Shown here: positions 1 to 51,819 of the stretch, one piece after another
Layout of the letters: each line of letters begins with the position of its first letter
Position numbering within the stretch: the first letter of the stretch is position 1
Assembly (NCBI RefSeq): GCF_964204865.1
Contig: NC_135250.1
Location: 930,001-994,000 of the forward strand
DNA length: 64,000 nt
Reading direction: 5' to 3'
From: Styela clava
Taxonomy: Eukaryota
The notes under the pieces: model-generated
Told to the model about the DNA's origin: nothing
The model's database searches: none
The model's input: only the letters and a program-made list of their open reading frames with translations
Translations under genes and position numbers: made by a program

Positions 1-2094
1 TAATGAGCCTATAATTTAATTATAATTAGACGAAGAGCAAAAAAACGAAGAAAAGTTGATGCTAGATGCAAAGGGTTCAATGGCGCCGAAAATATTCAAA
101 TGGATTTTTTTGAGATGCAATGCAATGAAAAAATAAATCTATATTCTATTCGAGATATGTATCACTACTTGATGTTTATAAAAAAAAAAAGTATCTTATT
201 CATAGAAAACTCTATCCAAATTTAACAAATCATTCAAAAATTTCAAATCGATGTTTTGAAGTACATATGCATGCGAACAATTATTTTCGAAAATGTACAT
301 TTGAAAGAGCAAGCTGAGAAATCGGACTACTGATTCCCATTGATGAAATGTTTTAATCGTGGCTTCATCCAGTGTCCCCTTTAGAAAAGAGTGATGCAAC
401 AAAAAGTGTCACATTAAAAGTCATGTAAATTTTTTTCTTTAAAAGTCGAGTTTACGAGTTGGGCAGTCTTGGCGCGCTGTTAAAATTAACTTTTGATATG
501 TGTGAACTGTGATTCATCAGCCATCCGTTCGGTTTTTAACATTTTAAAAATATGTGCAAGTTTGCAAAAATATGTACAAGTTTCAATGACTTGCAACCTT
601 TAATTTTGGCCCGCGAGCAACAAACGGTTGCCTACCCGTCTACGATTGGTGTAGAATAGAGCTCAACTCACTTCTACTAATTACATTATGTCAATGATTG
701 GATGAAATACAACGTGTTTTACATTTTCGCTCTGGACAACAGACCAACAGATACAAACATGAACGCGGAAAAGCCATGACGTTTGCAATTTTCACCCGGC
801 TAATTTTATTATAATCACTGGTAGTATGTTATATTGGTTCGTATACTAGTGGGCTAACTATACACATTTCTGCCTATGAACACACCACCACTTTAAACTT
901 CAAATTACCCTTTATCTCCGTGTTAAAAGCCTATCGGCGTATGTGGCCGTTTCTTATTTATTATCAAGCACTATACATTGTCTCTATTTACTTATCATGG
1001 ATGTGAAGGATGATGTTGTTGTTCAAGTAATGTCAAATCAATAGGCTCGGTTAAATCGACGCAACCTCGAGCTCGTCTTACATGAATTCAGTATGAAGTG
1101 GCGTTTAGATGTTGTTACTGGTTATGGAAAGATATTAGCCTTTACCTGAAAAATCGGCTCTTTTAACGATTAGCGTATTCGCGGATGTTGTTTTAGAAGT
1201 CGCTACATGGAAATTTCCCAGAAAGAAACGGGTGTTACTGCATGCGCCTCTGAATCGCCACAATAATTATATTGTGTTGAAGTGATTGCCTCAGATGCAC
1301 TTGTAATTCAAGTAGCGGGAATACCAGAAAGCGATACAGTGCATATTTGAATACAACTTTCATCGTTACCATATCCTTGAATAAAAGCTAACAGCCAAAG
1401 TCCACAGTGCTGTATACAAAATTAAATATACAAGATTATTTGATAAAAACTTTCCAATGTTCTAAATTTTTGTACTCGGGGATTTGTGCGGCGAAACAAA
1501 AGATAACGCGAGCGTATGGAGTTTTGTATATGCGGTATTTCGGCAATCATTTGCATTGACATTGTGACGTGGTTAGACGTAATTCTAATATTTGAATGAC
1601 TTATTTCAATTGGTGTTAGGGATGACATATGCAGACATTGTTGAGTTACGATCACGTCTACTTCAAGCACCTGTGGAACTAACTATACTATACTCTATTC
1701 GAGACAAGATAGCGCCAAACAGAGCAATTAATGACAAGCACATCAATGGCTTATCTGAGGAGAAATTTTACACGATATTCACCTTGATGTTCGATTCCTT
1801 CATTGAGATTGTCAAAAGTTGAAGGTTTCTAACATTCGATCTCATTGACTCGTTATATGTCAAATACTGAAGTTTTGAGCAACGACTCAACACCGAGGCA
1901 ATGATATCAGGGTCGTCAGCGTGGAGAAATTCAATCTTCTTTATTTCATCATACTGAACTCTGTCACCGTATTTGTGAAGATGAGTAAATATCTGCTTTG
2001 CTTCTTTACTATCCACGGTGAGTCGATGAATTCTTATCTGGATGAGAAGGCGACAATGTTTAACTTTCTATGTGTTGCAATAACACAGACCACG

Positions 2095-2840
2095 TTATTG
2101 GACAGTTATATTGTAGCCCACAACATCGCTAAAAAGTATCGCCTGTTTGTTGGAGGGGAATTTTCCCGCGAATGTATGCTGCAAGTTTTGAAAGTCATTT
2201 CTCTTGATATAAAAAGTAAATTTTCCGGCATAAGTTTTTCTAACAACGGGTAAACATCTTATGCACACACAGAATTATGAACATCAACAAATCAGAACTT
2301 CGATCGAGACTGACAGATAATCACTTGAATGCGTTATTGCGAATAGAATGTACCAAATACGAGCCACGTTCTGAACATCTTATTTCGAAAAAACCGTAAT
2401 TACACGTAGCCTATATTATATATGTGCTATATACAAAAATACACAACCGAATTATGTTGAGATGTCGTTTTTTTATATTTATATACATTGGGGTGGTTTT
2501 TGTGTAACAAAACAAGCCATAAGTAGCCATTTAGCCGTATTGCAGATGTACATGCAACTTTATTAGTCACTATCTGTTGTAAATTCGTTGTTGATATTTG
2601 TGCTTGTTATTCCTCAGGCATCACCAACTATTATAAATATTAATTTGATTACATAACAAATTGCGATGCTAGGTGTATCTAAAATCAAGCTTGCAGCCTA
2701 TTGTAGTGCCTAATTTTTATAATATTCTCAGGGCGTGCTCAAACCGTACGGTTGCGCCCTTTTTGCCGCTCCCCTTCTCTAGTCCGCGAATATCCGTTTG
2801 CTTAAATTTTTGCCCGCGGTCAATAAACTTTGGGAACCCC
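2095..2840 (+). mobile_element. Internally deleted GTF2IRD2/SPIN-like hAT relic in an NLR intron (paralog ~47405-48146)
   Basis: SYIVAHNIAKKYRLFVGGEFSRECMLQV..SKFSGISFSNN is joined directly to the C-terminal MNINKSELRSRLTDNHLNALLRI, ending 'aaactttgggaacccc'. Confidence 0.75.
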
Positions 2841-3504
2841 TTGTGTACAGTATTATATTGACTGAATAAACGCCAGAGTGGGATTTTAAACTGTCCAGCC
2901 GGGACAAGACGTTGAAAAGTGGGACTGTCCCGCCAAAAACGGGACGTATGGTAAAACCTAATTACATGCTGATTCTTAATTCTGATAATAACCCGAAGTT
3001 TCAGACGTCTTCACAAATGGAAATAAATTTTTAATGAATATCTGGAACGGAAATACGTCAGGCCATATTATATTTGAACCGTGGCCTTAGACAAATCAAG
3101 ACCTCATGACGAGGCTGGTAATCCGGGTTTCAGGCAGATCCGCAATAACATACAACGCCTACTTGCAGAAATTTTGAATAATCTCGCCCGAAAACAGAAG
3201 AAATTAAGAAAGAATAAATTAATTTCCAACGCCGGACTACGTTGTAAGCACTTTGCGTTTGGCTATGGGGTGAACCTCTATGAATACACTGTGCATACAA
3301 ATTCAGAGCTTTATACTTATGTTTTCTGTTCACATATTTCCTGTTAAATCTGCCAAATACTTAGAAACTGCCCATTGATATCGACATTAACTAAAATATA
3401 CACTCTAGCACTAAGATATTTGTTAGAAATGGCAATGTGCTTCTGAAACTAGAATGAGGTTTATTATTACTTATATATAATCTAATATTGAATCGACTGC
3501 ATTG

Positions 3505-3666
3505 CCGCAACGTTTGTGTCTTCGAGAAGACTCTTCAGAACATCGATGTGTTGCATATTGAGAGTTCCTGACTGCATAATTCTGCATTCAAAGCTATTTC
3601 TGAATATATAAACCTTTTGCAGAAGTTCGAGTAATTCGCCAACAATTTGACATAGTTCGCATTTAT
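3505..3666 (-). pseudogene. Degenerate extra LRR-type exon of NLR copy A (absent from copy B)
   Basis: IVGELLELLQKVYIFRNSFECRIMQSGTLNMQHIDVLKSLLEDTNVA aligns with exon 8 DSGIFLNLLKVLTKYKEKLHFNAVQLNTLNEIHIPDLECVFENFDTT. The acceptor 'gtcatcag' is out of frame with it and the donor is GC. Confidence 0.55.
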
Positions 3667-6600
3667 CTGATGACAAATAACAATCATACCGATAATTAAA
3701 TATGATATTTTCAAAAGGTAAAAATTGCAGACTAACAAGATCTTCATATTTATTGTTTGGTTAAGAATGTACCTAAGTCATTAGCGGTCCAAGAGAAGGT
3801 CTTCAAATTCTCAGTGACGAAGATATGTCAAATCCGTCATATTTTGGAAGCAAAAGGACAAATAAAAGCAGAATCTTTAGAAACTATGTCTTTTGCAGCG
3901 CATGAGTTTATTTAAAATATTCAGAACTATGGACCTTGTATTATTTGGTTATGAAAATGATGACCACGATGAATTATCCAGCCATAAATACATACACTCA
4001 CTGAATGCATAGTTTTTTAAAAGTGGATGCCATTAAAGACTTATGAATTCAATTATTAGAGTATCTAGTCTTTCACGTTACCCTTGAACTATTTTTTGGA
4101 CTTTGGATTAGGGGTCTGTAGAACCCACTTTTAGAACCCCCGATATAGACTAAATATGGCAGAGCAATCGAGCGTAAAGATCATGGCCTAAATTATTTAT
4201 TCAGCTAGTTTTTATATATTATATTAAAACCTAGCGTTGTGTCAAAGTTTTCAAAAACGCACTCCAAATCCGGGATATGCATTTCGTTCAAAGTGTTCAG
4301 TTGAACGGCATTAAAATGCAATTTTTTCTTGTATTTGGTAAGCACCTTCAGAAGATTTAAGAAGATGCCACTGTCAGTGATCATTCGTTTGATAGTTGTA
4401 ATGTATACCTGTTAAGGATTATTTAATTTGTTGAGTTTAGAAACGAACGAATTACTTCAGGTCTTATTTGATTTACAAGTTTGTGTTTGCCGTGAAGCAG
4501 TCTTCGCCGAAGTAACCCAAAGTAGCTCATGCCACATTTATCAGATATGTTTTTTACTTTCTGTCGATATGGACCATGAAATAAAACGGGATTATTTCGT
4601 ATCCAATGGCGAAATTTTCTTAAAATGTACTATGTAGTAAAATAATTTCCCAATGTCGTATCAATATAAATAGCATCATTGGTCGATGGCTAATACAAAG
4701 CTGTACGGAAAAGGGCATGCGACATGGGTCACGTTAAATGATTTGAAAAATGAAATACTAATAATCAAGTTTCTCCAACCTCGAAACATTTTTTTAATAA
4801 AGCAAGTAGAAATATTCGAACTATGTCTTAAATATAGATATACTTAAGATGATTTTACAACGGATGAATACAAAAATAACTCGTTATTTAGTATTTGACC
4901 ATTTCAATACCGCAGACTCAATTTTTTGGGATGAAACTAATTCAGAGATCTAAGTCCACGTGACTAACAAACACAAAAATTTAATCACCGCAATCCGAGA
5001 TTCAGCTAAAAAGCCTTTCAAATCACTGAGTTGTTCTCCGTTTATTGACCCAATATCAAGAGATTTGACTTTATTGAAAAACTGAGTTGCACCGCAAACG
5101 ACGTGGAAGTCCGCAGCCGAGAGTTGCAGTTTATTTAAGTTGATCGATTCCATTGGCGAATCAGCTACGATTTCTTTTGCGCTGTCACCGCATTGATGCA
5201 ACGAATGCAAAAGTTCAAGAAGATCTGGTTGCTCAAGTTGTGGGTTTCGGAACTGTTCTTGAAAACTTTTCTTTAGAGCGTCTTGCTTCAATGTAAGAGA
5301 ATCTGCCAATGCTATAAAAACAGAAACACTTGAGCGAGGTTCGTCGAAACAATTGATTATTTTGATCATTTGTTATTTGACTTTACCCGTATTTTCTTTT
5401 TTTGCTTGTTCAGGTGTGGCATCTTGTTTAGCAAATTGTAAAGGTGTTGGTGTTCCCGCAATTGCTGGTAAAGGTTAAAATATATTTATATTCATCTTTT
5501 TTGACATAACAAGCCGAGCTCAAATTTCCTACCTGTAAAGCTAACATCTTTGTATGTGCTGCTTACTGATGCACCGGACTCTACATATTGTGCTGCAACA
5601 ATATGCTTCTTCTTTTCTGGTATTAAATAAAATACATGGTAAATAACTTAGTCGTCTAATTACCTTCGAATTCAAAAATCTAATAACTTTACCAATATTA
5701 ACCGGACCATGGTAAATATGTGTGACTGTCATTTGAGATGAATTTTTTTCAGCTCCGGACGATAATATTTTAAAATCTGCAAATAAATAATAATGTTTTT
5801 GAATTTTCATGTTTTTGATATCTAATACCATGCATCGATGTGTTATTGAAATTTGTTCGCGCAATTTTTTTTTTTTTGAGAATGAAAGATTGAATACCTG
5901 TTCTTAATAAACTGACTGACGGGTCGTTTCCCTTGACTAATGTGCGAGTATTATCGTTCAAAATGATTCCACTTGTTATTCTTCTAACCATGGACCAGTG
6001 TGCAGTATGAAGAACGTTCAGGAACTTTCGGAATTCCTCGATTGTCATATCGATCACTTCCAAACTGGCCAGGGCCTCTTGAATGCTCTGGTGGCATAAT
6101 ATATACTTATAGTTTCCTTCGACAAGCTTCTGATTTATTCCACTGGTACCTGGATAAATGATGATCAGATCTTGTATATCTTCAACTGTTATTTCTTCGG
6201 GTAAATCTTTTTTTGTGAAAGTGACTTGACCTTTTTTGGTTGCCTGGAAACATGTTATCTTTAAAGCATCAATTACTTTGTGGATGTCTTCCTTAGCACG
6301 AACGTGTTCGGACACTGTCATATCGCGTAACACAAGCAAAAGAATTTCACTGAATGTTTTGGGTGGATTCTCTTTATGTCTGGAAACCACCAGAACCGTG
6401 AATACTAAAAACATCGGTATCGTACAGATGGGAATCAAAGCTGGTGCTTTCTCTTGTAAATGATTCCAGATTTTATCGCCGTCATCTCCCCCAAGCTTTT
6501 TGACGAGTATTTGTACCGATTCGTATGAAAAGCCTGATAAAGCAATGACTTTATTCGCGCGGACACTGCCATCAAAGCTTCTTATTCCGTGTTCTCGAGA

Positions 6601-8165
6601 CGAATATAGAACACGGATTCCAGGAAGAAGATTCCCTGACAATAAACCATTCAGCATATCTGTTGGATTCATTTTGTCTCGATAATTACTAGTTCCTTGA
6701 TTTTTTCCTAAATCTTTTATGTTTTCGTATTGATCTGCCCCATCCAGCACTAGCATATATTTGTTGGGATTACTAGCGATCCACTCAATACTTTTCGTTC
6801 TGTCACTCGGAGCCATGTTAACGTTTCCTAACAGGAGATTTCCCAGGGTTAATTTCTCGTCTCCATGAAAGTCTCGAAAGTTCATGTGCTGTATAACTTC
6901 AACTTCCTCTAGCCCTGGAATCTTTTCATCCATCATGTCATTCGAAAATTTTTCGTCATCTCAGTTTTACCATAACCAGCTCCCCCTATTAATGCGACTC
7001 TTCTAACATTCGGATCTTTGAAGAATTCGTCAGGCGAAGTATTTGTTCCTCCCTGGGCATGTTTAAGTGGACTAAATGATTTCTCGGGTTTGTATTCTCG
7101 TTCGTCGGCCCCAGTTTCGTAGAAATTAACTTCCACTAAAGTAGGCGTAACTTGAAAATCATGTTGCTTCAATCCTGCAATCTTAGAAGGCTTTGTATTT
7201 TTCCGAGTGGTCTCATTAACTTTCTTTATTAAGCGTCGACGAACTGAAAATATTATATATTCTATTTGAGTAACAAAGAACAACGAATGCAGTGTAATCA
7301 TGTTTGGCGATACACGCAGTCCTTGCAATTGAAGAGTATAGAGTTTTCTTAGTTCAATGAAGAAATGTCTGATATATACCATGTTGTTTATTAATTTTAC
7401 TGCGATGTATTTTTCTACGACTAATTGGAAAATGGATTTTATTAAAATTCGCTGTATGTACATTTAAAGAGTGAGTTAGATATGAAAGGCGGTAGGTATA
7501 TTAGTTAACAAAGAATATCTGATACATAGCATGGTGTTTATTAATTTTTCTACGATTAATTGGAAAAGGGATTCAAGCGAAATTCGATAAAGGCTCATCT
7601 AATAATAATATACTCATCGTGCATATTTTCTGTTTAAACCAGCAACTCACCGAAGAAATTCCCTAAAATAAATGAAGAAAAATTCACAACATGTTTTATT
7701 AATCAAATTATATCAGCAGACTCAAGAAAGATAGTTACCCATTGTCTATTCCTCAGCGTGCATTGATCGATTATATTGAAAACCCTATTCTACTTTACTT
7801 GTTTAACTAATTTCTGGAATATAAGGAAATAGTAAGGAAATAATAAATCTATGCACAATTATATCGACACGAAAAAAGTCTGTTACGGGTATACTACTGT
7901 TTACAATGTTGGTTGATTACGCAATCTTTTGAAAATAAATTGATGTGATAGTTTACTAAGAGCCACTTTCGTTTTTTTACCTCTAACATTTGCAAGTGAT
8001 AATAGTGCTGTAGTAGACAGGAGATTTTTAGAATACCAACAATAGAAATAATAACATTTCAACAAAAAAACTTCTTGTTAAAAATCGGACTACTCCGTTT
8101 TGTATGGTATGTAAGAAATATGCAAGTCTCATGAGATAATAAATTATGGATGTGTCGTCCTATAG

Positions 8166-38132: not shown

Positions 38133-39557
38133 AATAAATCGGCAATGATGACATTTCTATGTGGTCAAAATAATATTTATCCCAAATATATCGGGAAATT
38201 TTCATAAAATACATTATTTACCCGTCTTACTTATCTGGGTCGACGTTTCTAAATTTACAAAACGATGTTGACACGCTTTATGCAAAATTAGAAATTGAAA
38301 AATATGATGCGAAAGGGCAAGGAATTTTTTTTTTCACAGTTATCGTTTCTACCTGTCAGCGATAGTCGTCGGAAAATTCTTACCCGTAACTCGTTGTAAA
38401 TTAATGTTAATAAATTCTATTTTGCTTTTCAATGCGCTGTGATTTGTATTAATTAAAGTGATTGAGACGGAAAAAGAAATTCCTTAAATTAGCTTATGAC
38501 CAGTGGTGGGATTCAAATTTTCTCTCAGCCGGTTCAATCACAAAAGTCATATTTTTCAGCCGGTTCTGTTACAAAAAATTATATTTTTTTGGCAAATAAA
38601 CTGAAAATTTTTGAAATTACTTCCTAATTAACATTTCAAAATAATGGTTAAGTAATCTTCATTATCGCAAAATTGGAATCGGAATTTTTATTCATGTTGA
38701 GGATTTTCTGTATTGCTGTATATATTATATACTCGTTGATAATGAACTTAAAAGGTGTATGATACCCTAAGCCGGTGTATGATCTACTGAAAGCAAATGC
38801 TTGAATGTTGATATTCAATAAAATAAACACAAGAAATCCTAACAAAGAAAAAAAAAGGTTTACAGAAATTAAACTCAAATTTTGCAGTTTTTACATCAAA
38901 TATTTCCAAATAAAATGACACCCTGATTGTCATCGATTTCTTTTGAATCTTTCTGAAACTAACTCATTGTTGGAATTTCCAAATGACCCACGGGGTATCC
39001 AACGTCATTCGTTGCAGTTTTTTAAAGGGAAAACTGCTCGCCAGTAGCCATACAAAACCCAGGAGATTTCACGAAATCGAGACAAGTAATGCAAAATTAC
39101 ATTGAATCCTGCGAGCTAATCTTATCGTTTCCTAGAAATCTCTCAAACAATAACTCAAAATTTTATTCAGAATTTATTTCTATTAGATTACCAGAGGTTA
39201 ATAAATGATATAGTACATAAATTATATGCGGAGAAATAAAAAATTAATTTTCTTGTAATAAGATTTTAATCATACAAGAAAATATTGAGATTCTCAGAAC
39301 GCTAATTTCTGTTTTTCAGTGTTAACTTAATTTTTCAAAGAATACCACAAATCTCATATATATATATAAAAATTACAAATAAAATATCAGATAATATTGT
39401 TCATGCACAAAGAATTTAAAATCAAGTGTATTGTCAAATTTGATGCCAGTTAGATAGACTCTATTCTGAGGTACCAGTCTCACAGAAATTCACTTTCAAA
39501 ATAAATTTGCCGATTCAATGAAACGACAGTTTAAGAGCAGCAGCAAACAGATGTTTC

Positions 39558-40268
39558 ACGTACGATGTTTCTGGGAAAAACTTATCCACTTCGATGTTTG
39601 GTAATCAAGGAGTTTAATTTGCAGATTCTGGTAAACAAAAGAAATCACTATATTTATCATATAATCAGTAAAACATAGACCAGGTTAAATTCAAAAACTA
39701 TTGAACTAAACGAGTCTGAAAATCGGGTATCTTTAGTCTCCAGTACAACAGGTTTGTCACGTTTACATGGTTAGAATACTTAATCATTATCTATACAAGA
39801 ACACAGACTTGCAAATATTTTATATAATTATTTTATTGCACAACTATGTGACAATACTTTTTACAGAACATCTAGGAAACTATTCAGTCACAGCGTGATA
39901 TCGCCCTGATGAACATAGTTATCATCTGTGCTTGTTGTGATACCAGTTCATCACTAGACTGGCCATTATTGAAGATAATCATCGATAAAATAACTTAATT
40001 ACAATGCCGGTCAGCTCTCAACAATAAAACTTGTATTCGTGGTTGCGCTGAGAAATATTTTCGTGAATACTAAATCAATGATTACCGTTGGAGGCAGAGA
40101 GTTCAGTTTTGTTTGAATAATCTTGATTTCTGCTTCGCATACGCAAATGGATATGTTCAATTCATCAGTGACGTGAGGTAGGCAATCACACACTGCAATC
40201 GGTTCTTCACGTGATAACTGTGGTAAAGTTTAATTGAAAACTATTTAATAAAGTTCAAATGATGTAGA
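39558..40268 (-). CDS. Candidate C-terminal LRR-like exons of NLR copy B (possibly partly degenerate)
   Basis: Exon ~40218-40087 LSREEPIAVCDCLPHVTDELNISICVCEAEIKIIQTKLNSLPPT|gtaatc (phase 0) splices in frame to ccag|NLQIKLLDYQTSKWISFSQKHRT* (~39627-39556). An upstream acceptor at ~40268 gives LHHLNFIK*. Linkage to the NLR is inferred from strand and position. Confidence 0.45.
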
Positions 40269-41117
40269 CTGAGAAATAGAAATAGTAGGCTTTATAAATT
40301 CTGGTAACGCTTAGATTATTTTAACTGCTCTGACTTCTATTAGCGCGCAACAAATACTATGAAATCGGACTTCAGTAGAACGAGACGACAGTCTATAGGT
40401 AGATGCAGGTGTTTTGTAGATTTGATATATTTGTAGATTTCTTTCTCACTAGTTGAATTGAGTGAAGAAATAGGGGGACAGAATGAAAGTGAGAGAGAGC
40501 TTTGCGTAAGCTGATAATTGTTAGACAAAATATCCATATTATATACTTAAGCTTATTTTCCGTCAGTGGAAATTTTAAAATATGAAATGAATATTATCAG
40601 AACCAGACTGTGGAAAGTTCTATTTATTTGCAACGTGTACTAGGTGTGATAATTTCCGTTTGCACAAAATTGGAACCCATAATCACTCGGCACACAGAGC
40701 AATTTATTATTACTTAAATATAAAATATCTTGAAGAAAAAAATGAATTATTACAATATTTATAACTTTTTATCAGCAACAGAGATGACCTAATAATACAG
40801 GCCTATGAGGCATATGCTGAACCTTTTTTGCTAAGGCTCTCAAGCACTATGATAACAATTTATTTGTTGACATGCTTTCTCATGTCTGATGTAGGTATGA
40901 AACAGCATTAGCTACCGGATCCGCAGATTTTATTAAAATAGTATAACGATTGTGATGGAAGTTGGGAAATAATTCCAATATTTGAATTTTAATATTATGA
41001 ATATCGAATCAATTTGTTAAATAAAAACCACATCATAAACCAAAATTTTGAATCATGTGTATATCTGCGATATATTTACTATAATCCTGATCTGTATATA
41101 AAAATAAAATGACTTAC

Positions 41118-41129
41118 CACTCGGACCAG
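41118..41129 (-). CDS. 12-nt microexon CTGGTCCGAGTG
   Basis: Minus strand reads aaattacttttcag|CTGGTCCGAGTG|gtaagtca: consensus acceptor and donor, frame-preserving length. Confidence 0.65.
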
Positions 41130-42212
41130 CTGAAAAGTAATTTTCATTGGTTGAATTTTAATAATATAAACTTCTACTTTTAATCTATTAAACTTAACGT
41201 AAATCCCAACTCGTGAAACTCTCGGATACTAGAACGCAAATTCAATGTTTCATCTATGGCAGACATTTCATTGTATAATTTTGATAAATTTATGATATTT
41301 TCATGAGTGCAACTACTTTTCTTGTTATAGTTGAACTAGGTATGTCTGAGGAAGTCTGACCTTGGTCAAACAAAACGTTACAGAAATATGTTCGTGTGCA
41401 GCAAGACTCTTGAGTAACTTGAAATACTATGAAATCTGGACTTCAGTAGAACGTGACGACAGTCTATCGGCAAAGGCAGGTGTTGATATATTTGCACATA
41501 TATTTCTCACTAGTTCAATTGAGTGAAGGAAGTAGGAAACAGAATGGAAGTAAGACGAGGCTTTGCGTAAGTCGATAATTGATAGACAAAATATCCATAT
41601 TATATACTTAAGCTTAGTTTCCGTCAGTGGAAATTTTAAAATATGAAATGAATATTTCCAGAACCAGACTGTGGAAAGTTCTATTTATATGCAACGAGTA
41701 CTAGGTGTGATAATTTCCGTTTGCACAAAATTGCAACCCATAATCACTCGGCACACAGAGCAGTTTTGTGAAAAACTGTCTTGAATTATTGTTAAATATA
41801 AAATATCTTGGAGAAAAAAATGAATTATTACAATATTTATAACTTTTTATCAGCTAATTAATTCATACTTTTACAGAGATAACCTAATAATACAGGCCTA
41901 TGAGGCATATGCTGAACCTTTTTTGCTAAGGCTCTCAATCACTATAATAACAATTTATTTGCTGACATGCTTTCTCATGTCTGATGCAGATATGAAACAG
42001 CATTAGCTACCGGATCCGCGGATTTTATTAAAATAGTATAACGATTGTGATGGAAGTTGGGAAATAATTCCAATATTTGAATTTTAATATTATGAATATC
42101 GAATCAATTTATTAAATAAAAACCACATCATAAACCAAAATTTTGAATCATGTGTATATCTGCTATATATTCACTATAATCCTGATCTGTATATAAAAAT
42201 AAAATGACTTAC

Positions 42213-42224
42213 CAATGGGTGTCT
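42213..42224 (-). CDS. 12-nt microexon AGACACCCATTG
   Basis: Minus strand reads aaattacttttcag|AGACACCCATTG|gtaagtca, at the same position in the next ~1.09-kb unit. Confidence 0.65.
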
Positions 42225-45200
42225 CTGAAAAGTAATTTTCATTGGTTGAATTTTAATAAGATAAACTTCTACTTTTAAACCTATTGAACTTAACGTAAAT
42301 TCCAACTCGTGAAACTCTCAAATACTAGAACACAAATTCAATGTTCCATCTATGGCAGACATTTCATTGTATAATTTTGATAAATGTATGATATTTTTAT
42401 GCGTGCAACTGCTTTTCTTGTTATAGTTGAACTAGGTATGCCTGAGGAAGTCTGACCTTGGTCAAACAAAACGTTACAGAAATATGTTCGTGTGCAGCAG
42501 GACCCTTGAGTAACTTGAAATGCTATGAAATCAGGACTCAATTAGAACGGGACGACAGTCTATCGGCAAAGGCAGATGTTTAAATAATTGTACATTTCTT
42601 TCTCACTAGTTGAATTGAGTGAAGGAAGTAGTAAACCGAATGGAAGTGAGGGGGGGGGGGGCTGTGCGGGAGCTTATAATTGATAGACAAAAATATAAAT
42701 GGTATATACTTCAGCCTATAAACTTAAAATATAGAAAAAATTTAAAAAAATGAAATGAATTGTATCAGAACTAGATTGTGAAATGTTTGATTTATTAACA
42801 ACGTGTACTAGGTGTGCTAATTTTGCGTTTGTACAAAATTAAAACCCATAATCACTCGATGCACACAGCAATTTCGTGAAAATATATCTTGCATTATTAC
42901 TTAAATATAAAGAATATTTGGAGAAAAAAAATAACTTCAATATTTTCAACTTTTTGTGAGCTATTCCATACTTTTTACAAAGATGACCTAATAATACAGG
43001 TGCTATACTTTACTAAGACTTTTTTCATTTACGATAAAGTAATCACAATATAAATTAATACCAAATCATTTGCTGACATGCTTTCTCATGTCTGATTGAG
43101 GGTATGAAACAGCCTTATCTCCTGGATCCGCAGACTTTATTAAAATAGCATATTGGAAGTTGGGAAGTTATTTCAATATTTGAATTTTAATGATTTGGTT
43201 TCTGCGAGACTAATTACTTATCCTTCTTCTATGCTTTTGTGCCGGTAGATCCGCATCCGTATGAGTGCTAGGATGCTGTAGCGAGAGTAAAAATAACTAT
43301 CCTGAGTGATACAAGAGTCTTGCTGCACACTAACACAAAGTAAATTCCCATTTTGAACCAATTAAATAAAAGCAAATTCCAAAACATGAATCTCTCGGGT
43401 ATAACTTAACGCAAATTCAATGTTTTATCTGCGGCGGACATTTCGCTGTAATATTACGGTAGATATCAAGTCAAATTGCTTGAGTTGTGATACAAATGGA
43501 ATTTACTCATATTCTGAATTCACTCGTATTTATTCCACAATCTCCACTTCATATAAATTCGAAATAATTTTAACATTACAGTATTGTTAACCTAAAACGT
43601 ATCTACATACTACCAGTTTATTTACTAAGGCTACTGATAAAAAATAAGTTTTTTTGCAAATTGATGCAAATTTAAAATCGTGAATCTGCGAAACCACCAA
43701 ATGCGAATGAAATATGTTAAAACTGTGTGAACATTATATTGTATGATTTTGATGAATACGAGATAGATATTGGTTCCAGGCATTGACAGAAAAGGCGTAT
43801 GCTCGTATTTTAAATTGACTTTTTCATTTTGCAACCTATGCTTCACACATGAGAGATATTTCTTTTCATCTCAACTAGGCGATTGATTGTTCGAAATAGT
43901 CAGCTTTGAAATTTCGATGCATTTAACAATCTCAACGCTGTTCTCATAGCTGAGTTACGATGACCAATTTGCGGAGGTTTCAATTGTTATTATTTAATAC
44001 AAAAGTAACACGGACACATTTTAAAATTAAAATCGTGAAAAAGTCTATTAGCTTGATAAATATCGCATCCCGAGGTCAGTAATGATATTATTGTTCGTTT
44101 AAAATTGGGACCATAAATTACAAATTATGATATGGAAAATCAAATCCTACGCAAAAGATAAAAATAGGAATGAAATTAATTTGGGTTGTTAATAGCTGTT
44201 TTTATCATCTTCGCCGATGTAAACTAACAGTTGTGCCGCCTGAACGGAATATAAAAACAAACTACGATGTTTGCCGTTGCGTAAGAATTAATATCGGGAA
44301 ATAACTAGCTTATTTATGAAACAATCGAGAGCGACATGGTTACCGTTAATCACGTATTGATTAATGGTCGACAATGAGTAGAAATGGGACGAGCAAAATA
44401 TTCACCAAACGACGTCTGGTGGAGAAATCATATTAAAATAATGCGTAATAGTGTATGAGTGTACTTTATCCTTTCATATGGACGGAATAATATTTACAAA
44501 ATAACTCACAAAATCAAATAGCTCGATCTTCATGTTGCTGATCTAGAAATATAACATCATTATTTGAAATCCCCTTTGATAAACAAAATTTCTGGTTCTA
44601 ATTTATTTATAATAATAATATTGCTGGTTTTGTAACTTTACACAACAAGAAGCCTGAATCCTGACTACATATAGTATATCTGTTAGAAAGGTTAACAGGT
44701 ACCAACAGCTGGAGTGTCGTAAAATGTTTCATATGTCATTCTTGGCGGCCATCTGGGTACAAAATATCACGCCAACCCGTTGTTTCATATCACACTGCCA
44801 AATTATACAGGAAATATCCCGAAATGGCGTACAGTTGAAAAGTCATATTCGCTCACGATATCTATCGCCTCGGTATCATTTTGCAGAGCTCAAAATGAAT
44901 ATGAACCACCACAAACAGGAGATTCAACTTTCATAACCGGGAACTCACGACAGCGTAAACACCCTGATCAAGTATTTTGTTTGATAGAGTATTTTCTAGA
45001 ATATCATGTGTTATTGTGATAATTTCCAAAATCGAAACTTACATCAATTACTTTACACTTACCTTTGAAACTTGATTATACCCCCCATTTATAGTATGTG
45101 GTATCATCACTCAGGGGTGTTTTATTTACGTCCAAATTCTTAATTTTATTATTATGTATTTCCCAGTTGAATCATACATGGCCAGATAGGTCATCATCAG

Positions 45201-47091
45201 ACGAACAATCACTAAATTATAATTAAAGTGATAGGTCTTATCAATGACCTTTCATTTCAGTAACTCATTGTTATTTAATCAAGAATTCGCCCATTTTATT
45301 GTGCGTACCTCCCATAGTTTTACACTGATGGTTTAAATATGCATGCACTGCCTTTCGTGTTTTAAGAAGTCTGACACAGAAATATATTTGTGTCAATGTG
45401 CAGCAAGACTCTTGAATCACTTGGGCTAATTACTCTAATAGCTAAATAAAAAAGCATTCCAGTGTGCAATGGACATGGAAATACGGCGTTTCAAAAATAT
45501 TCCCAGACAAAAGGGCTAGGCAAGTAGACAAGGGATTATTGTTTCAAACCAGGAGTAGCAACCCAAAGACGATTCACTGAATTATAGTAAAAAAAGGCTG
45601 TTTTGACGAATAATTCACAATTACTTGTTTAATAAGCCTATAATTTAATTATAATTAGACGAATAGCAACAAAACGAAAGAAAGTTGAGGCTAGGTGCAA
45701 AGGGTTCAAAGACGCCGAAAATATTCAAATGGATCAACTTAAATGTCATTTGTAAAACTTTTTTTTAAAGTCGAGTTTACGAGTTGGGCAGTTCTGGCGC
45801 GCTGTTAAAATTAATTTTGATCTGTGTGAACTGTGATTCATCGGCCATCCGTTCGGTTTTTAACATTTTGAGAATATGTGCGGCCCGCCAATGACTTGCA
45901 ACCCTTAATTTTGGCCCGCGAGCAACAAACGGTTGCCCACCCGTTTACGAATGATGTAGAATAGAGCTCAACTCACTTCTACTAATTACATTATGTCAAT
46001 GATTGGATGAAATACAACGTGTTTTACATTTTCTCTCTGACCAACAGACACAAACATGAACGCTCACCTTGAAAACTTCCAAGAAACCGGAAAAGCCATG
46101 ACGTTCGCAATTTTCACGCGGCTAATTTTAGTATAACCACTGGTAGTATGTTATATTGGTGGATGGCAAATATACTCGTATACTAGTGGGCTAACTATAC
46201 ACATTTCTGCCTATAAACCCACCACCACATTAAACTTCAAATTACCCTTTATCTCCGTGGTAAAACCCTATCGGCGTTTGTGGCCGTTTCGTATTTATCA
46301 TCAAGTACAGTACATTGTCTCTATTTACTTACTCAATGTGAAGGATGATTTTTTTTGTTCAAGTAATGTCAAATCAATAGGCTCGGTTAAATCGACGCAA
46401 CCTCGAGCTCGTCTTACATGAATTCAGTATGATCTGGCGTTTAGATGTTGTTACTGGTCATGTAAAAAAAAATTAGCCTTTAGCTGGAAAGTCGGCTCTT
46501 CTAACGATTGGCGTATTCGCGGCTATTGTTTTAGAAGTCGCTACATGGGAATTTCCCAGGAAGAAACGGGTATTACTGCATGCGCCTCTGAACCGCCGCA
46601 ATAATTATAATGTGTTGAATTGATTACTTCAGATGTTCTTGTAATTTAAGGAGCGGGAACACCGGAAAGCGATACATTGCATATTGGAATACAACTTTCA
46701 GCGTTAACATGTCCTTGAATAAAAGCTAACAGCCAAAATCCACAGGGCTATATACAAAATTAAATATACAAGGTTATTTGATAAAAACTTTGCAATATTC
46801 TATATTTTTGTACTCGGGGATTTCTGCGGCGAAACAAAAGATAACGTGAGCGTATGGAATTTTGTATATGCGGTATTTCGGCAATCATTTGCATTGACAT
46901 TATGACGTGATAGACGTAATTTTAATATTTAAATGACTTATTTCAATTGGTGTTAGGAATGACATATGCAAACATTGTTAGGTTACGATCACGCCCACTT
47001 TAAGTACCAGTGGAATTAACTATACTAGAAATGTACATGAGTGCAAATGTCCGTGAGTGCAAATAAAATAGAAAGTTCACATGATATTCAC

Positions 47092-50000
47092 CTTGATGTT
47101 TGATTTCCTCATTGAGTTTGTCAGAGATTGAAGGACACTAACAAACGATTCCCGAACCTCTCCAATTAACAAATACTGAAGTTTTGAGCAACGGCTCAAC
47201 ACCGATGCAATGATATCAGGGTCGTCACCGTAGCGAAATTCGATCTCCTTTATTTCATCATACTCAACTCTGTCACCGTATTTGTGAAGATCGATGAATA
47301 TCTGATTCGCTTCTTTACTATCCACGGTGAGTCGATGAATTCTTATCTGGATGAGAAGACGACAATGTTTAACTTTCTATGTGTTGCAATAACACAGACC
47401 ACGTTATTGGACAGTTATATTGTAGCCCACAACATCGCTAGAAAGTATCGCCGGTTTGTTGGAGGGGAATTTTTCCGCGAATGTATGTTGCAAGTTTTGA
47501 AAGTCATTTCTCCGGATATGAAAAGTAAATTTTCCGGCATCAGTCTTTCTAACAACGGGTAAATATCTTATGCACACACAGAATTATGAACCTCAACAAA
47601 TCAGAACTTCGATCCAGACAGACAGATAATTACTTGAATGCGTTATTGCGGATAGAATGTACCAAATACGAGCCACGTTCTGAACACCTTATTTCGAACC
47701 AACCCTAATTACACGTAGCCTATATTATACATATGCTATATACAAAAATACACAACTGAATTATGTTGAGATGTCGTTTTTTTATATTATATACATTGGG
47801 ATGGTTTTTGTGTAACGAAACAAGCCATAAGTAGCCATTTTGTCGTATGCCAGATGTACAAGCAACTTTATTAGTCACTATCTGTTGTAAATTCGTTGTT
47901 GATATTTGTGCTTGTTATTCCTCAGGTATCACCAACTATTATAAATATTAATTTGATTACATGACAAATTGGGATGCCAAGTGTATCTAAAATCAAGCTA
48001 GCATCTTTTTGTAGTGCTTAATTTTTATAATATTCTCCAGGCGCGCTCAAACCGTACCGTCGCGCCCTTTTTGCCGCTCCCCTTCTCTAGTCCGCGAATA
48101 TCCGTTTACTTAAATTTTGACCCGAGGTCGATAAACTTTGGGAACCTTAATGAATTATCCAGCCATAAATACATACACTCACAGAATTCATAGGTAAAAG
48201 TGGATGCCATTAAAGACTTATGAATCCAATTATTAGAGTATCTAGTCTTTCACGTTACCCTTAAACTATTTTTTTGGACTTTGAATTAGGGGTCTTTAGA
48301 ACCCCCGATATAGACTAAATATGGCAGAGTAATCGAGCGTAAAGATTCATGGCCTAAATTTTTTATTCAGCGAGTTTTTATATGTTATATTAAAACCTAC
48401 CGTTGTGTCAAAGTTTTCAAAAACGCACTCCAAATCCGGGATATGAATTTCATTCAAAGTGTTCAGTTGAACGGCATTAAAATGCAATTTTTCCTTGTAT
48501 TTGGTAAGCACCTTCAGAAGATTTAAGAAGATGCCACTGTCACCGATCGTTTGTTTGATGGTTGTAATGTTCACCTGTTAAGGATTATTTAATTTGTTGA
48601 GTTTAGAAACGAACGAATTACTTCAGGTCTTATTTGATTTACAAGTTTGTGTTTGTCGTGAAGCAGTCTTCGCCGAAGTAACCCAAAGTATCTCATGCCA
48701 CATTTATCAGATATGTTTTTTACTTTCTGTCGATATGGCCCATGGAATATAACGGGATTATTTCGTATCCATAAAAATGGCGAAATTTTCTCAAAATGTA
48801 CTATGTAGTAAAATAATTTCACAATGTCGTATCAATATAAATAGCATCATTGGTCGATGGCTAATACAAAGCTGTACGGAAAATGGCATGCGACATGGGT
48901 CATGTAAAATGATTTGAAAAATGAAATACTAATAATCAATTTTCTCCAACCTCAAAACATTTTTTAATAAAGCAAGCAGGAATATTCGAACTATATCTTA
49001 AATATAGATATACTTAAGATGATTTTACAACGGATGGAAAACAAAAATAACTCGTTATTTAGTATTTGACCATTTCAATACCGCATACTCAATTTTTTGA
49101 GATGAAACTAATTCAGAGATCTAAGTCGACGTGAATAACAAACACAAAAATTTAATCACCATAATCTGAGATTCAGCTAGAAAGCCTTTTAAATCGCTGA
49201 GTTGTTCTCCGTTTATCGACCCAATATCAAGAGATTTAACTCTATTGAAAAACTGGGTCGCACCGAAAACGACGTGGAAGTCCGCAGCCGAGAGTTGCAG
49301 TTTATTTAAGTTGATCAATTCCATTGGCGAATCAGCTACGATTTCTTTTGCGCTGTCACCGCATTGATGCAACGAATGCAAAAGTTCAAGAAGATCAGGT
49401 TGCTCAAGTTGTGGGTTTCGGAACTGTTCTTGAAAACTTTTCTTCAGAGCGTCTTGCTTCAATGTAAGAGAATATGCCAATGCTATAAAAACATAAACAC
49501 TTGAGCGAGATTCGTCGAAACAATTGATTATTTTGTTCATTTGTTATTTGACTTCACCTGTATTCTCTTTTTTCGCTTGTTCAGGTGTGGCATCTTGTTT
49601 AGCAAATTGTAGCGGTGTTGGTGTTCCCGCAATTGCTGGAAAAGGTTAAAATAAATTTATATTCATCTGTTAAGGTAACAAGCAGAGCTCAAACTTCCTA
49701 CCTGTAATGCTAACATCTTTGTATGTGCCGCTTACTGATGCACCAGACTCTACATATTGTGCTGCAACAATATGCTTCTTCTTTTCTGGTATTAAAAAAA
49801 AATACATGGTGAATAACTTAGTCGTCTAATTACCTTCGAACTCAAAAATCTGATAACTTTACCATTATTGAACAAACATCCATGGTAGATATTTGTGACT
49901 GGCGTTTGAGATGTGTTTTTTTCAGCGCTGGACGATAATATTTTGGAATCTGCAAATAAATATTATTGTTTTTGAATGTTCATGGTTTTGATATCTAAAA

Positions 50001-51819
50001 CAATATTTCGATGTGTTTTAATTAAAATATGGAATACCTGTTCTTAACAAACTGACTGACGGGTCGTTTCCCTCGACTAACCCGCGAGTATGATCGTTTA
50101 AAACGATTCCACTCGTTATTCTTCTAACCATGGACCAGTGTGCAGTATGAAGATCGTTCAGGAACTTTCGGAAGTCCTCGATTGTCATATCGATCACTTC
50201 CAAACTGGCCAGGGCCTCTTGAATGGTCTGATGACATAATATATACTTATAATTTCCTTCGACAAGCTTTTGATTTATTCCACTAGTGCCTGGATAACAG
50301 ATGACCAGATCTTGTAAGTTTTTAACTGTTATTTCTTTCGGTAAATCTTTCTTTGTGAAAGTGACTTGACCTTTTTTGGTTGCTTTGAAACATGTCGTCT
50401 TTAGAGGATGAATTACTTCTTCGTAGATATTTACCTTAGCGCGAGCGTGTTCGGATACTGTCATATCGCGTAACACAAGCACAAGAATTTCACTGAATGT
50501 TTTGGGTGGATTCTCTTTGTGTCTGGAAACTACTAGAATTGTGAATACTAAAAACATCGGTATGGTGCAGATGGGAATCAAAGCCGGTGCTTTCTCTCGT
50601 AAATGATTCCAGATTTCATCGCCGTCATCTCCCCCAAGCTGTTTGATGAGTATTTGTACCGATTCGTATGAAAAGCCTGATAAAGCAATGACTTTATCAG
50701 CTCGGACATCGCTATCGAAGTCTCTTATTCCATGTTCTCGAGACGAATACAGAAGACGGATTCCAGGAAGTAACTTCCCTGACAACAAACCATTCAGTAT
50801 ATCTGTTGGATTCATTTTGTCGCGGTGGGTAAAATTTCTTGTTTTCTTCCCCAAATCTTCTGCGTTTTCATATTGATCCGCCCCATCCAGCACTAGCAAA
50901 TATTTGTTTGGATTATTAGCGATCCATTCAATGCTTTTCGTTTTGTCACTTGGAGTCATGCTAAAGCTTCCTAATAGAAGACTTTCCAGAGTTAATTTTT
51001 TGTCTGCAGGAATGTCTCGAAAGTATATGTGCTGGATAACTTCAACTTCTTCTAGTCCTGGAATCGTTTTATCCATCACATCATTCGAAAATTTTTTTGT
51101 CATCTCGGTTTTACCATAACCAGCTCCTCCTATCAATGCGACTCTTCTAACATTCGGATTTTTGAAGAATTTGTCTGGCGAAGTATTTGTTCCCCCCTGG
51201 GCATGTTTAAGTGGACTAAATGATTTCTCGGGTTTGTATTCTCGTTCGTCGGCCCCAGTTTCGTAGAAATGAACTTTCACTAAAGTAGGCGTAACTTGAA
51301 AATCATGTTGCTTCAATCCTGCAATCTTAGAAGGCTTTGTATTTTTTCGAGTGGCCTCATTGACTTCTCGTTTTAGGTGTCGGACTGAAAATATCATTTA
51401 TTTGCTTTGAGTAAAAATGAACAACGAATGCAGTGTAAACATGTTTTGCGATACAAGCTGTCTCTACAAATAAAGAGGTAGGTAAAGTATGCAAGGTGGT
51501 GTCTTAGTTCGATAAAGAATATCTGGTGACGTTTATTAATTTTACTGCGATTAAATGGAAAAAGGATTTAAGTAAGGCTCGTCTAATAATATACTTATCA
51601 TGCATATTTTCTGTTTAAATCAGCAACTCACCGAACAAATCCCCTAAAAGTAAAGAACGAAACTTCACAACATGTTGTTTTAATCCATTTTCCCACAGCA
51701 GACTTAATAAAGGTGTCACCAACCCAACGATAACATTCCCTAAAACAAACGAAGAAAACTTTACGACATGTTGTATTAATCAAATTATCTCAGCAGACTT
51801 GAGAAAGATATTTACCCAT
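47092..51819 (-). CDS. NACHT-domain/LRR NLR-like protein, copy B (apparently intact; 3' end probably continues to lower coordinates)
   Basis: Exons reconstructed from GT-AG sites with consistent phases: 51819-51816 (ATG G), 51643-51632 (12 nt), 51384-50038, 49949-49863, 49785-49702, 49635-49558, 49482-49160, 48574-48401, 47346-47092. NACHT motifs: Walker A ALIGGAGYGKT, Walker B LLVLDGADQ, sensor-1 LYSSR, HD1 ICTIPMF, winged-helix CHQTIQEALAS. Later exons are LRR-like (INLNKLQLS, VKSLDIGSI, CSKLQYLLI). Confidence 0.85.

Follow-up and report, generated by a model that had tools for sequence, protein, structure and literature searches.

Microexon cassettes that probably diversify the LRR-like 3′ end of clustered NLR genes in Styela clava

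On the minus strand of a 64,000-nucleotide stretch of Styela clava DNA (the window), two 12-nt segments downstream of an NLR gene differ from each other far more than the near-identical sequences that enclose them. Are these segments exons of the NLR gene and, if so, what has made them diverge? A sequence-only reading had taken them for optional or mutually exclusive microexons, read in phase 2, that edit the ligand surface of the receptor. Our analysis makes it probable that the NLR gene in the window belongs to a cluster of four paralogs with diversifying microexon cassettes in their LRR-like 3′ ends.

Both 12-mers sit between ...aaaattacttttcag, with the acceptor ttttcag, and gtaagtcatttt..., with the donor gtaagt. 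Splice sites and unit alignment define cassette B1 (AGACACCCATTG, RHPL in phase 0; 42213..42224, minus strand) and cassette B2 (CTGGTCCGAGTG, LVRV in phase 0; 41118..41129, minus strand). They are carried by two complete tandem intron units of about 1.09 kb (40355..42525, minus strand) with a repeat spacing of 1095/1096 nt and blocks that are 90-97% identical. Beyond them lies a third, decayed and more diverged partial unit (42526..43464, minus strand) that lacks the AG acceptor; the approximately 140 nt expected to hold its microexon have been swapped for the inverted arm of a dispersed MITE-like repeat. The exons of B1 and B2 differ at 7 of 12 bases as opposed to 19 of 499 in the ±250-nt flanks (binomial P 8e-8 for that span), and on either side of the exon the two units are identical over about 35 nt (upstream) and more than 30 nt (downstream). 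Both 12-mers preserve the frame and are free of stop codons in all three frames. The near-identical units, the identical flanks, the confinement of the differences to the 12-mer and its open frames were thus described correctly in the sequence-only reading. When five cassettes were aligned, the 12-nt exon was the most variable of all 12-column windows, while the last 48 nt or so of the intron before it formed the best-conserved stretch of the unit. The difference amounts to 5-11% in these 48 nt, 51% in the exon and 18-34% farther out.

The gene to which these cassettes would belong is annotated in RefSeq as LOC144424588 (XP_077970139.1). Its large NACHT exon (50018..51397, minus strand) matches Pfam PF05729 with an E value of 7.8e-20, compared with 2e-19 for P0010; this ORF has 84% identity with an NLR model from Styela clava and is matched by P0017. 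Proteins of this NLR family have 824-951 residues, which are mostly encoded by large exons including the 1.4-kb NACHT exon. The translated 3′ part of an LRR-like exon (47092..47325, minus strand) ends in ...SMRKSNIK and is followed by a phase-0 donor, aag/gtgaat, whose GT occupies 47091-47090. The RefSeq model runs through this donor to VNIM and a stop codon, whereas the RefSeq models of paralogs C and D splice the homologous donor to a 33-nt exon. The counterpart in the window is a 33-nt phase-0 exon encoding ISNMKIELFDF (44510..44542, minus strand), preceded by tatttctag and followed by gtgagt, with an RNA contig joint at 44524; it had been overlooked in the earlier reading. Its peptide matches the LRR β-strand motif, and its homologues in the RefSeq models, MSHMDIGSYDV and ISIMRIWSYGG, are both coding. 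This exon too is hypervariable among paralogs (9-12 of 33 bases differ versus 4-8% in the flanks), with the variation concentrated at the non-core positions of the β-strand.

The tail of the gene continues with a 132-nt phase-0 exon, LSREEPIAVCDCLPHVTDELNISICVCEAEIKIIQTKLNSLPPT (LSREEP...LPPT; 40086..40217, minus strand), which has the acceptor ccacag at 40218 and the donor gtaatc. It is covered deeply by transcript contigs with spliced joints at both ends, has homologous exons in RefSeq models and aligns with the tail of P0002 (tblastn E 1e-6). The coding part of the last exon is NLQIKLLDYQTSKWISFSQKHRT followed by a stop codon (39556..39627, minus strand), the translation of which is identical to the C-terminus of P0016; the 3′ UTR extends to about 39160. 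The intron between 39627 and 40086 (GT..AG, minus strand) was removed in RNA from three runs, and near-identical contigs cover 39161-39628. Phase 0 is kept by the 47092 donor, by the 33-nt exon and by the 40217 acceptor. This chain corrects the earlier reading in two respects. The acceptor proposed at about 40268 finds no support in RNA or homology, the one used being ccacag at 40218/40217, and the stop codon that followed the phase-2 chain was an artefact of that wrong junction. Phase 2 itself fails because another cassette, GCACGCCTAGGG, has a TAG in that phase; the real phase is 0.

Evidence for the coding use of such cassettes comes from the paralogs and from RNA. In paralog C (LOC120346016), each of the three RefSeq isoforms reads ...SNIK/ISIMRIWSYGG/LYPS/LSREQSVAVCDCLPH... 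(LSREQ...), in which LYPS is encoded by the cassette CTATACCCATCG at C1:1008119-1008130. In addition, run X2 yielded a spliced contig that connects 44524 with 40218 through 25 letters, which parse as the remainder of a 33-nt exon and CAAAACCGATTG, the latter 1 base from the genomic cassette CAAAACCGATCG. Since the reference genome contains no copy of either the 33-nt exon variant or the 12-mer in this contig, it derives from another allele or individual; it carries a single cassette. Sister cassettes serve as coding exons in this NLR family, and the earlier claim that the 12-mers are coding microexons on the strand of the NLR holds for the family to which they belong. Read depth is also high at 41.3, 42.5 and 43.3 kb of the window. 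This depth stems from the MITE-like repeat, which has about 2,560 copies in the genome, and a 58-nt candidate exon at 43226-43283 was rejected because its depth likewise came from that repeat and not from exons of the gene.

The genome contains eight cassettes in addition to decayed copies. All lie on contig C1 at the four clustered NLR paralog loci, where NACHT exons precede them by 8-11 kb. An exact pattern search of the genome returned seven cassettes and no match away from these loci. AG and GTAAGT are present in eight of eight, the length is 12 nt in seven and 9 nt in one, and no cassette has a stop codon in phase 0. Each array has one to four units, with two in the window gene (RHPL and LVRV). 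The genome-wide tabulation of 12-mers that the sequence-only reading had suggested yielded further copies, six different variants, varying unit numbers and mostly nonsynonymous differences. Searches for other annotated proteins with this tail gave only the models of the paralogs; the P0002 locus on contig C6 has phase-0 exons of 27, 27 and 30 nt in the same linker and no 12-nt cassettes.

Are the two cassettes of the window themselves used? It is possible, although unlikely, that the copies in the window are silent relics of a cassette family that is itself genuine, with the gene ending at VNIM and the tail RNA coming from paralog A or from other alleles. XP_077970139.1 lacks the tail, most contigs over 40202 differ from the window by one base, and the tail-exon contigs fit the window locus and its near-identical neighbour A alike, the 132-nt tail exon being identical in the two. 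Neither the RHPL nor the LVRV 12-mer occurred in any of the transcript contigs among the matches listed. Cassettes do decay, as seen in the dead third unit here and in paralog D, both units of which are defective (a weak aag acceptor or an AT donor). On the other hand, the quality of the splice sites parallels use: the consensus cassette of paralog C is included, and the defective ones of paralog D are skipped in its RefSeq isoforms, which also skip whole LRR exons. The cassettes of the window share the acceptor, the donor and the 48-nt upstream intron with the included cassette of paralog C, and the 33-nt, 132-nt and last exons of the gene are undamaged and keep the phase. Moreover, 12-nt exons and alternative 3′ ends are often overlooked by gene annotators; annotation pipelines cut off or miss gene ends of this kind, and the gene in the window is annotated without its tail. 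We infer that the window's own two cassettes are probably included in the mRNA of its gene.

The substitution pattern bears on why the exons differ. Among the six different 12-mers, the first and second codon positions vary at eight of eight sites whereas the third is invariant at three of four, and the pooled pN is 0.64 compared with a pS of 0.12; these values come from six short, related sequences, and the donor consensus places a further constraint on the final G of the exon. The contrast exists in phase 0 only, as would be expected of a coding sequence. In three exon comparisons, 7/12, 6/12 and 4/12 bases differed versus 3.8-5% in the flanks (P 8e-8, 1e-5 and 2e-3). The tandem duplication and a divergence far above that of the introns, noted earlier for one pair, are upheld. 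Taken together, the coding pattern of these sequences points to diversifying selection on amino acids, and would represent a very clean case of positive selection limited to a 12-base exon. We consider it very unlikely that the differences are unselected and arose through clustered or complex mutation, replacement of short segments, or neutral drift of a linker combined with gene conversion of the introns. Exon-sized segment swaps amid conserved surroundings have been proposed for venom genes under the name ASSET (PMC7285919). The paralogs are indeed mosaic: cassette B1 has the same sequence as A4 in the neighbouring paralog A, and A and D do not differ in their 33-nt exons, which indicates that conversion or unequal exchange is active among them. 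Swaps with unrelated sequence, or neutral drift, would nevertheless have altered third positions as well. Furthermore, the 2-5% divergence of the introns, taken as neutral, is far below the 33-58% in the cassette exons, the effect reappeared in three or more independent comparisons as well as in the 33-nt exon, and the rest of the genome contains no sequence that could have donated any of the 12-mers.

That the 12-mers are not exons at all, being box C/D snoRNA guides on the plus strand or chance splice-like motifs in a non-coding tandem repeat, is scarcely conceivable: CTGA does directly follow each 12-mer of the window on the plus strand, but it has become CTAA and CTTA in two cassettes that both retain the minus-strand AG, there is no Rfam match at E<=1 and no C box at a suitable distance, and sister cassettes are coding in RefSeq or present in spliced RNA, so that the snoRNA identity is refuted.

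We favor diversifying cassettes in coding use, and propose that the 3′ end of the gene runs from the SNIK exon (donor 47092) through the 33-nt β-strand exon, the cassettes and the 132-nt exon to the last exon. The short 3′ exons of every paralog would all be in phase 0, and the spliced transcript of the window would contain AGACACCCATTG and/or CTGGTCCGAGTG before TTATCACG. The approximately 1.09-kb unit around each cassette has been multiplied by tandem duplication, and the near-invariant flanks, with their consensus acceptor, nearby branch-site-like ttac and perfect donor, would allow the spliceosome to recognize so small an exon. Each included cassette would add four residues to the loop after the β-strand and, since the cassettes are symmetric and in phase 0, any subset preserves the frame. 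Strong diversifying selection would have saturated codon positions 1 and 2 and left position 3 and the introns almost unchanged, and the loop would consequently differ among paralogs and among individuals.

A structural model bears on the placement of these residues. Pfam detected no match to an LRR family in these NLR proteins. In the AlphaFold2 model of P0016, which is weak overall (mean pLDDT 46.6; loop block 72), the C-terminal 180 residues or so alternate between strand and helix in about eight repeats with a pLDDT of 70-90. ISIMRIWS forms a strand (855-862), which is followed by a loop with LYPS (866-869) and then by a helix from 872 onward. The best Foldseek matches of this model were NOD2, NLRP and NLRC4; whole-model alignments to NOD2, NLRP9 and NLRP3 had E values from 1e-14 to 1e-8 with low TM-scores, owing to the poor N-terminal part of the model. 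The cassette residues are thus predicted to fall in the loop that follows an LRR β-strand. The LRR register proposed earlier is retained as far as the location of the cassettes in an LRR-like C-terminal part is concerned, but not in its phase-2 reading. The modeled loop may have a role in ligand recognition, and the cassettes may in this way edit the ligand surface of the NLR.

The cassettes may also be used alternatively. We think it quite unlikely, however, that they constitute a splicing-based diversification device in which regulation admits some, or only one, of the 1-4 cassettes to each transcript. Every unit carries one intronic repeat arm with complementarity to a lone arm that precedes the array (-42 to -46 kcal/mol). 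Such repeat arms lie at 43294-43339 and 41389-41419, and competing pairing between that single arm and those in the units could underlie the choice of cassette. As the arms belong to the genome-wide MITE-like repeat, their complementarity may be incidental. In such a device, one NLR gene would give rise to several variants of a terminal LRR loop, and unequal crossing-over together with diversifying selection would renew the repertoire among individuals.

How do these cassettes compare with known systems? Our literature search found no account of microexon cassettes in an NLR, nor of the NLRs of Styela clava. Snake-venom PLA2 and three-finger-toxin genes have fast-evolving exons with conserved introns, including cases of ASSET (PMC7285919). 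The gene studied here encodes a receptor and not a toxin, and the conservation of synonymous positions in its cassettes speaks in favor of point changes under selection and not of swapped segments. The micro-exon genes (MEGs) of Schistosoma contain very short exons, mostly multiples of three, with long introns, generate protein variation and are difficult for automatic annotation (PMC10526429). Short exons, long introns, varied protein and annotation trouble are found in both. However, MEGs encode small secreted parasite proteins almost entirely from microexons, a description that this NLR does not fit: here the microexons contribute only to a loop in a large, intracellular protein of receptor type, and the cassettes are tandem copies of one unit.

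Vertebrate neuronal microexons of the SRRM4 type are 3-27 nt long and frame-preserving, have highly conserved flanking introns and insert a few residues into surface loops. The cassettes resemble them in their short frame-keeping exons, conserved intron flanks and predicted insertion into a loop. SRRM4-type microexons are deeply conserved in sequence, whereas the cassette exons are the most variable bases of their locus. Arrays of the Dscam1 type possess a docking site and selector sequences and admit a single variant to each transcript through competing RNA pairing or a comparable mechanism. Tandem duplicated exon units with diverging coding sequence are common to Dscam1 and the NLR cassettes, and the layout of the complementary arms is reminiscent, by analogy, of a docking site with selectors; unlike in Dscam1, the arrays hold only 1-4 units.

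The LRR exons of animal NLRs are modular, and the LRRs of plant R genes are hypervariable. The Styela clava genes share with such receptors a NACHT domain and modeled C-terminal strand-helix repeats built from phase-symmetric exons, as well as variation at the non-core positions of a β-strand and in the loop after it. They differ in that the variable module is a 12-nt exon in a duplicated cassette of about 1.09 kb instead of a whole repeat of 24-29 residues. Hypervariable surfaces of germline-encoded receptors are usually described per whole LRR repeat or per gene; here the unit is a four-codon exon with its own splicing cassette, which can be duplicated, lost or skipped with the frame intact. 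If the cassettes are used alternatively, they would let a tunicate, an invertebrate closely related to vertebrates, vary a binding loop cheaply.

The 12-nt microexons lie in tandem copies of one cassette unit, and the whole feature is carried by the minus strand. The two 12-mers, CTGGTCCGAGTG (41118-41129, cassette B2) and AGACACCCATTG (42213-42224, cassette B1), are both directly preceded by ...aaaattacttttcag and directly followed by gtaagtcatttt. Both sit in tandemly repeated DNA whose units recur every 1095-1096 nt and share blocks that are 90-97% identical; Tandem Repeats Finder did not report this ~1.09-kb repeat because its period exceeds the program's limit. Between the two exons 7 of 12 bases are different, against 19 of 499 in their flanks (+/-250 nt), which gives a binomial P of 8e-8 for the exon differences. 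The sequence-only reading, that near-identical units enclose divergent 12-mers, is therefore confirmed. Next to these units lies a third, partial and more diverged (42526-43464), in which the ~140 nt expected to contain the microexon have been swapped for an inverted arm of a MITE-like repeat; this is a dead cassette. A partial unit of this type is likewise present at a paralogous locus (C, below).

In a genome search, the cassette unit was found on the window's contig (C1) only, at four places, each 8-11 kb downstream of the NACHT exon of an NLR gene. Locus A (NACHT exon at 935.8 kb) has phase-0 cassettes for VFGS, QNRS, ARLG and RHPL; locus B, the window's gene (980.0 kb), for RHPL and LVRV; and locus C (1018.9 kb) for LYPS. 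Locus D (1050.9 kb) has IFQ (9 nt, with a weak aag acceptor) and a decayed 15-nt copy, GGATTCCATGGCTCG, with AT in place of GT at its donor; these lie within C1:1034001-1044000, around C1:1037.8 kb and 1039068-1039076. Locus A is a second NLR paralog in the window (~1780-6957, minus strand), with its four-cassette array at C1:924.6-928.1 kb, just ahead of the window start. An exact pattern (conserved acceptor context, 6-21 free bases, GTAAGT) recovered seven of the eight cassettes and matched nothing else in the whole genome; the eighth, which it missed, carries an additional T in the acceptor tract. All eight retain AG and GTAAGT. The variable unit number anticipated from the sequence was borne out, with one to four cassettes per locus and six distinct 12-mers. 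A snoRNA reading, with CTGA on the plus strand as D box, was rejected as the CTGA is not kept among the cassettes; Rfam gave no match at E<=1. The loci are mosaic: cassette A4 matches B1 exactly, A and D share an identical 33-nt exon, and A and B an identical 132-nt exon. Hence gene conversion or unequal exchange is at work here. On contig C2 alone, a genome-wide search found dozens of near-identical NACHT ORFs of 467 aa, which indicates a very large NLR expansion in Styela clava.

The window (C1:930001-994000 of the 377-Mb assembly) contains a large minus-strand ORF (50018-51397) with a NACHT domain; an NLR-like protein of Styela clava matches it at 84% identity. The RefSeq protein of this gene, XP_077970139.1 (LOC144424588, 824 aa), ends in ...SNIKVNIM*, with no tail annotated, because the model reads through the donor aag|gtgaat at 47092 (47077-47092 region). 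Since paralog models splice at this donor, the annotated gene probably lacks its real 3' end. At loci A-D the minus-strand order is the same: the ...SNIK exon (phase-0 donor at 47092 in the window), a 33-nt phase-0 exon (44510-44542, ISNMKIELFDF; MSHMDIGSYDV in A and D, ISIMRIWSYGG in C), the cassettes, a 132-nt exon (40086-40217, acceptor ccacag, LSREEPIAVCDCLPH...LPPT) and the last exon (39627 downwards, NLQIKLLDYQTSKWISFSQKHRT*). On contig C6, the equivalent linker of more distantly related paralogs contains phase-0 exons of 27, 27 and 30 nt, and the annotated protein P0002 includes their products. A candidate 15-nt phase-0 exon, GGTGTTTACGCTGTC (GVYAV, 44949-44963, minus strand), is flanked by cag and gtgagt; its homologues are VVYAV at A and C and RNYAS at D, and its product is absent from the RefSeq models of C and D.

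Donor 47092, the 33-nt exon and acceptor 40217 share phase 0, so the products of the window cassettes are RHPL and LVRV. The phase 2 proposed from the sequence alone fails, with a TAG in frame inside cassette GCACGCCTAGGG. Among the six distinct 12-mers, all first and second codon positions vary (2-4 states each), while the four third positions together show one change, with three of them invariant. Pooling the comparisons gave a pN of 0.64 and a pS of 0.12, the mostly nonsynonymous diversity that had been expected, and this contrast is gone in both other frames. Young cassettes (A4=B1, B2 and that of locus C) differ by 2-5% in their flanks and at 4-7 of 12 exon bases. Across the unit, the microexon is the most variable stretch (51% difference), the 48 nt of intron upstream of it the best conserved (5-11% pairwise), and the more distant intron intermediate (18-34%). 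The 33-nt exon shows 9-12 differences in 33 versus 4-8% in its flanks; its hydrophobic positions 1 (I or M), 4 (always M) and 6 (always I) are largely conserved, and the others change. The 132-nt exon likewise differs more than its flanks between C and D.

Are the cassettes used as coding exons of NLR genes? At locus C, the three RefSeq isoforms of LOC120346016 all contain ...SNIK ISIMRIWSYGG LYPS LSREQSVAVCDCLPH..., where LYPS corresponds exactly to cassette CTATACCCATCG at C1:1008119-1008130. Two of these isoforms, P0016 and P0018, differ further upstream by three residues (ALA) around residue 549, another 9-nt alternative segment, and at their N-termini by short MGNTLGNFF-type repeats. The isoforms of LOC120341846 (locus D) join MSHMDIGSYDV directly to LSREES, and this skipping of both D cassettes fits their defective splice sites. 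RNA evidence came from transcriptome-like Logan contigs of four runs placed on window 39000-44999. Intron 39628-40085 (GT..AG, minus strand) is removed in three runs, and the 132-nt and last exons are well covered, by tail contigs that fit loci A and B alike. One contig of run X2 joins 44524 to 40218 with 25 letters between. Read on the minus strand, it contains nt 1-19 of the 33-nt exon, 14 bases that complete it as ISNMKIGSITM, then CAAAACCGATTG (QNRL) and TTATCACG...; this 12-mer is one base from cassette CAAAACCGATCG of locus A. Neither the 33-nt variant nor the 12-mer was found in the reference genome, so the contig comes from another allele or individual and also shows between-individual variation. 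Coding use thus holds for sister cassettes, but the window's own two 12-mers were not seen among the contigs listed.

P0016 was modelled with AlphaFold2 from an alignment of 13 paralog sequences. The model was poor overall (mean pLDDT 46.6), with the last ~180 residues at 70-90 and alternating strands and helices. ISIMRIWS forms strand 855-862, LYPS (866-869) lies in the loop after it, and a helix begins at 872. The best Foldseek matches were NOD2, NLRP9, NLRP3 and NLRC4; Pfam matched no LRR family in these proteins. That the cassette would lengthen and vary the loop after an LRR β-strand is thus inferred from the model.

We propose that the cassette acts as a self-contained splicing unit, in which 48 conserved nt upstream of the exon (with ttac and ttttcag) are combined with a consensus donor, gtaagt. 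Cassette number would change as the 1.09-kb unit is duplicated in tandem. Decay also occurs, by MITE replacement in the window's third unit and by a GT-to-AT donor change in D. Since the cassettes are symmetric and in phase 0, any subset could be included, and the four encoded residues would be the target of selection. A dispersed MITE-like repeat (~2,560 genome copies; window arms 41389-41419, 42485-42515, 43294-43339 and 45387-45432, core GTGTGCAGCAAGACTCTTGA) contributes one arm to each unit, and this arm is complementary to an inverted one located after the 33-nt exon and ahead of the array. The predicted duplex has -42 to -46 kcal/mol versus -14 for shuffled sequence, and within the pre-mRNA the repeat's inverted arms could form duplexes of -42 to -66 kcal/mol. 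Such pairing could influence exon choice, or the complementarity may equally be incidental. The repeat often occurs in close inverted pairs genome-wide, and its arms cause the depth peaks and 'goes back' joints in transcript contigs.

The nearest known systems are the modular LRR exons of NLRs, together with hypervariable LRR surfaces, Dscam-type exon arrays and neuronal microexons. Also near are the micro-exon genes of Schistosoma (PMC10526429) and venom genes in which introns are more conserved than exons (PMC7285919). We found no description in the literature of a 12-nt exon in a tandem conserved intron cassette of an NLR, and one cassette product, LYPS, is already in RefSeq models without comment there. 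None of the systems named above is known to bring together these three features, the 12-nt exon, the conserved intron cassette in tandem copies and the NLR.
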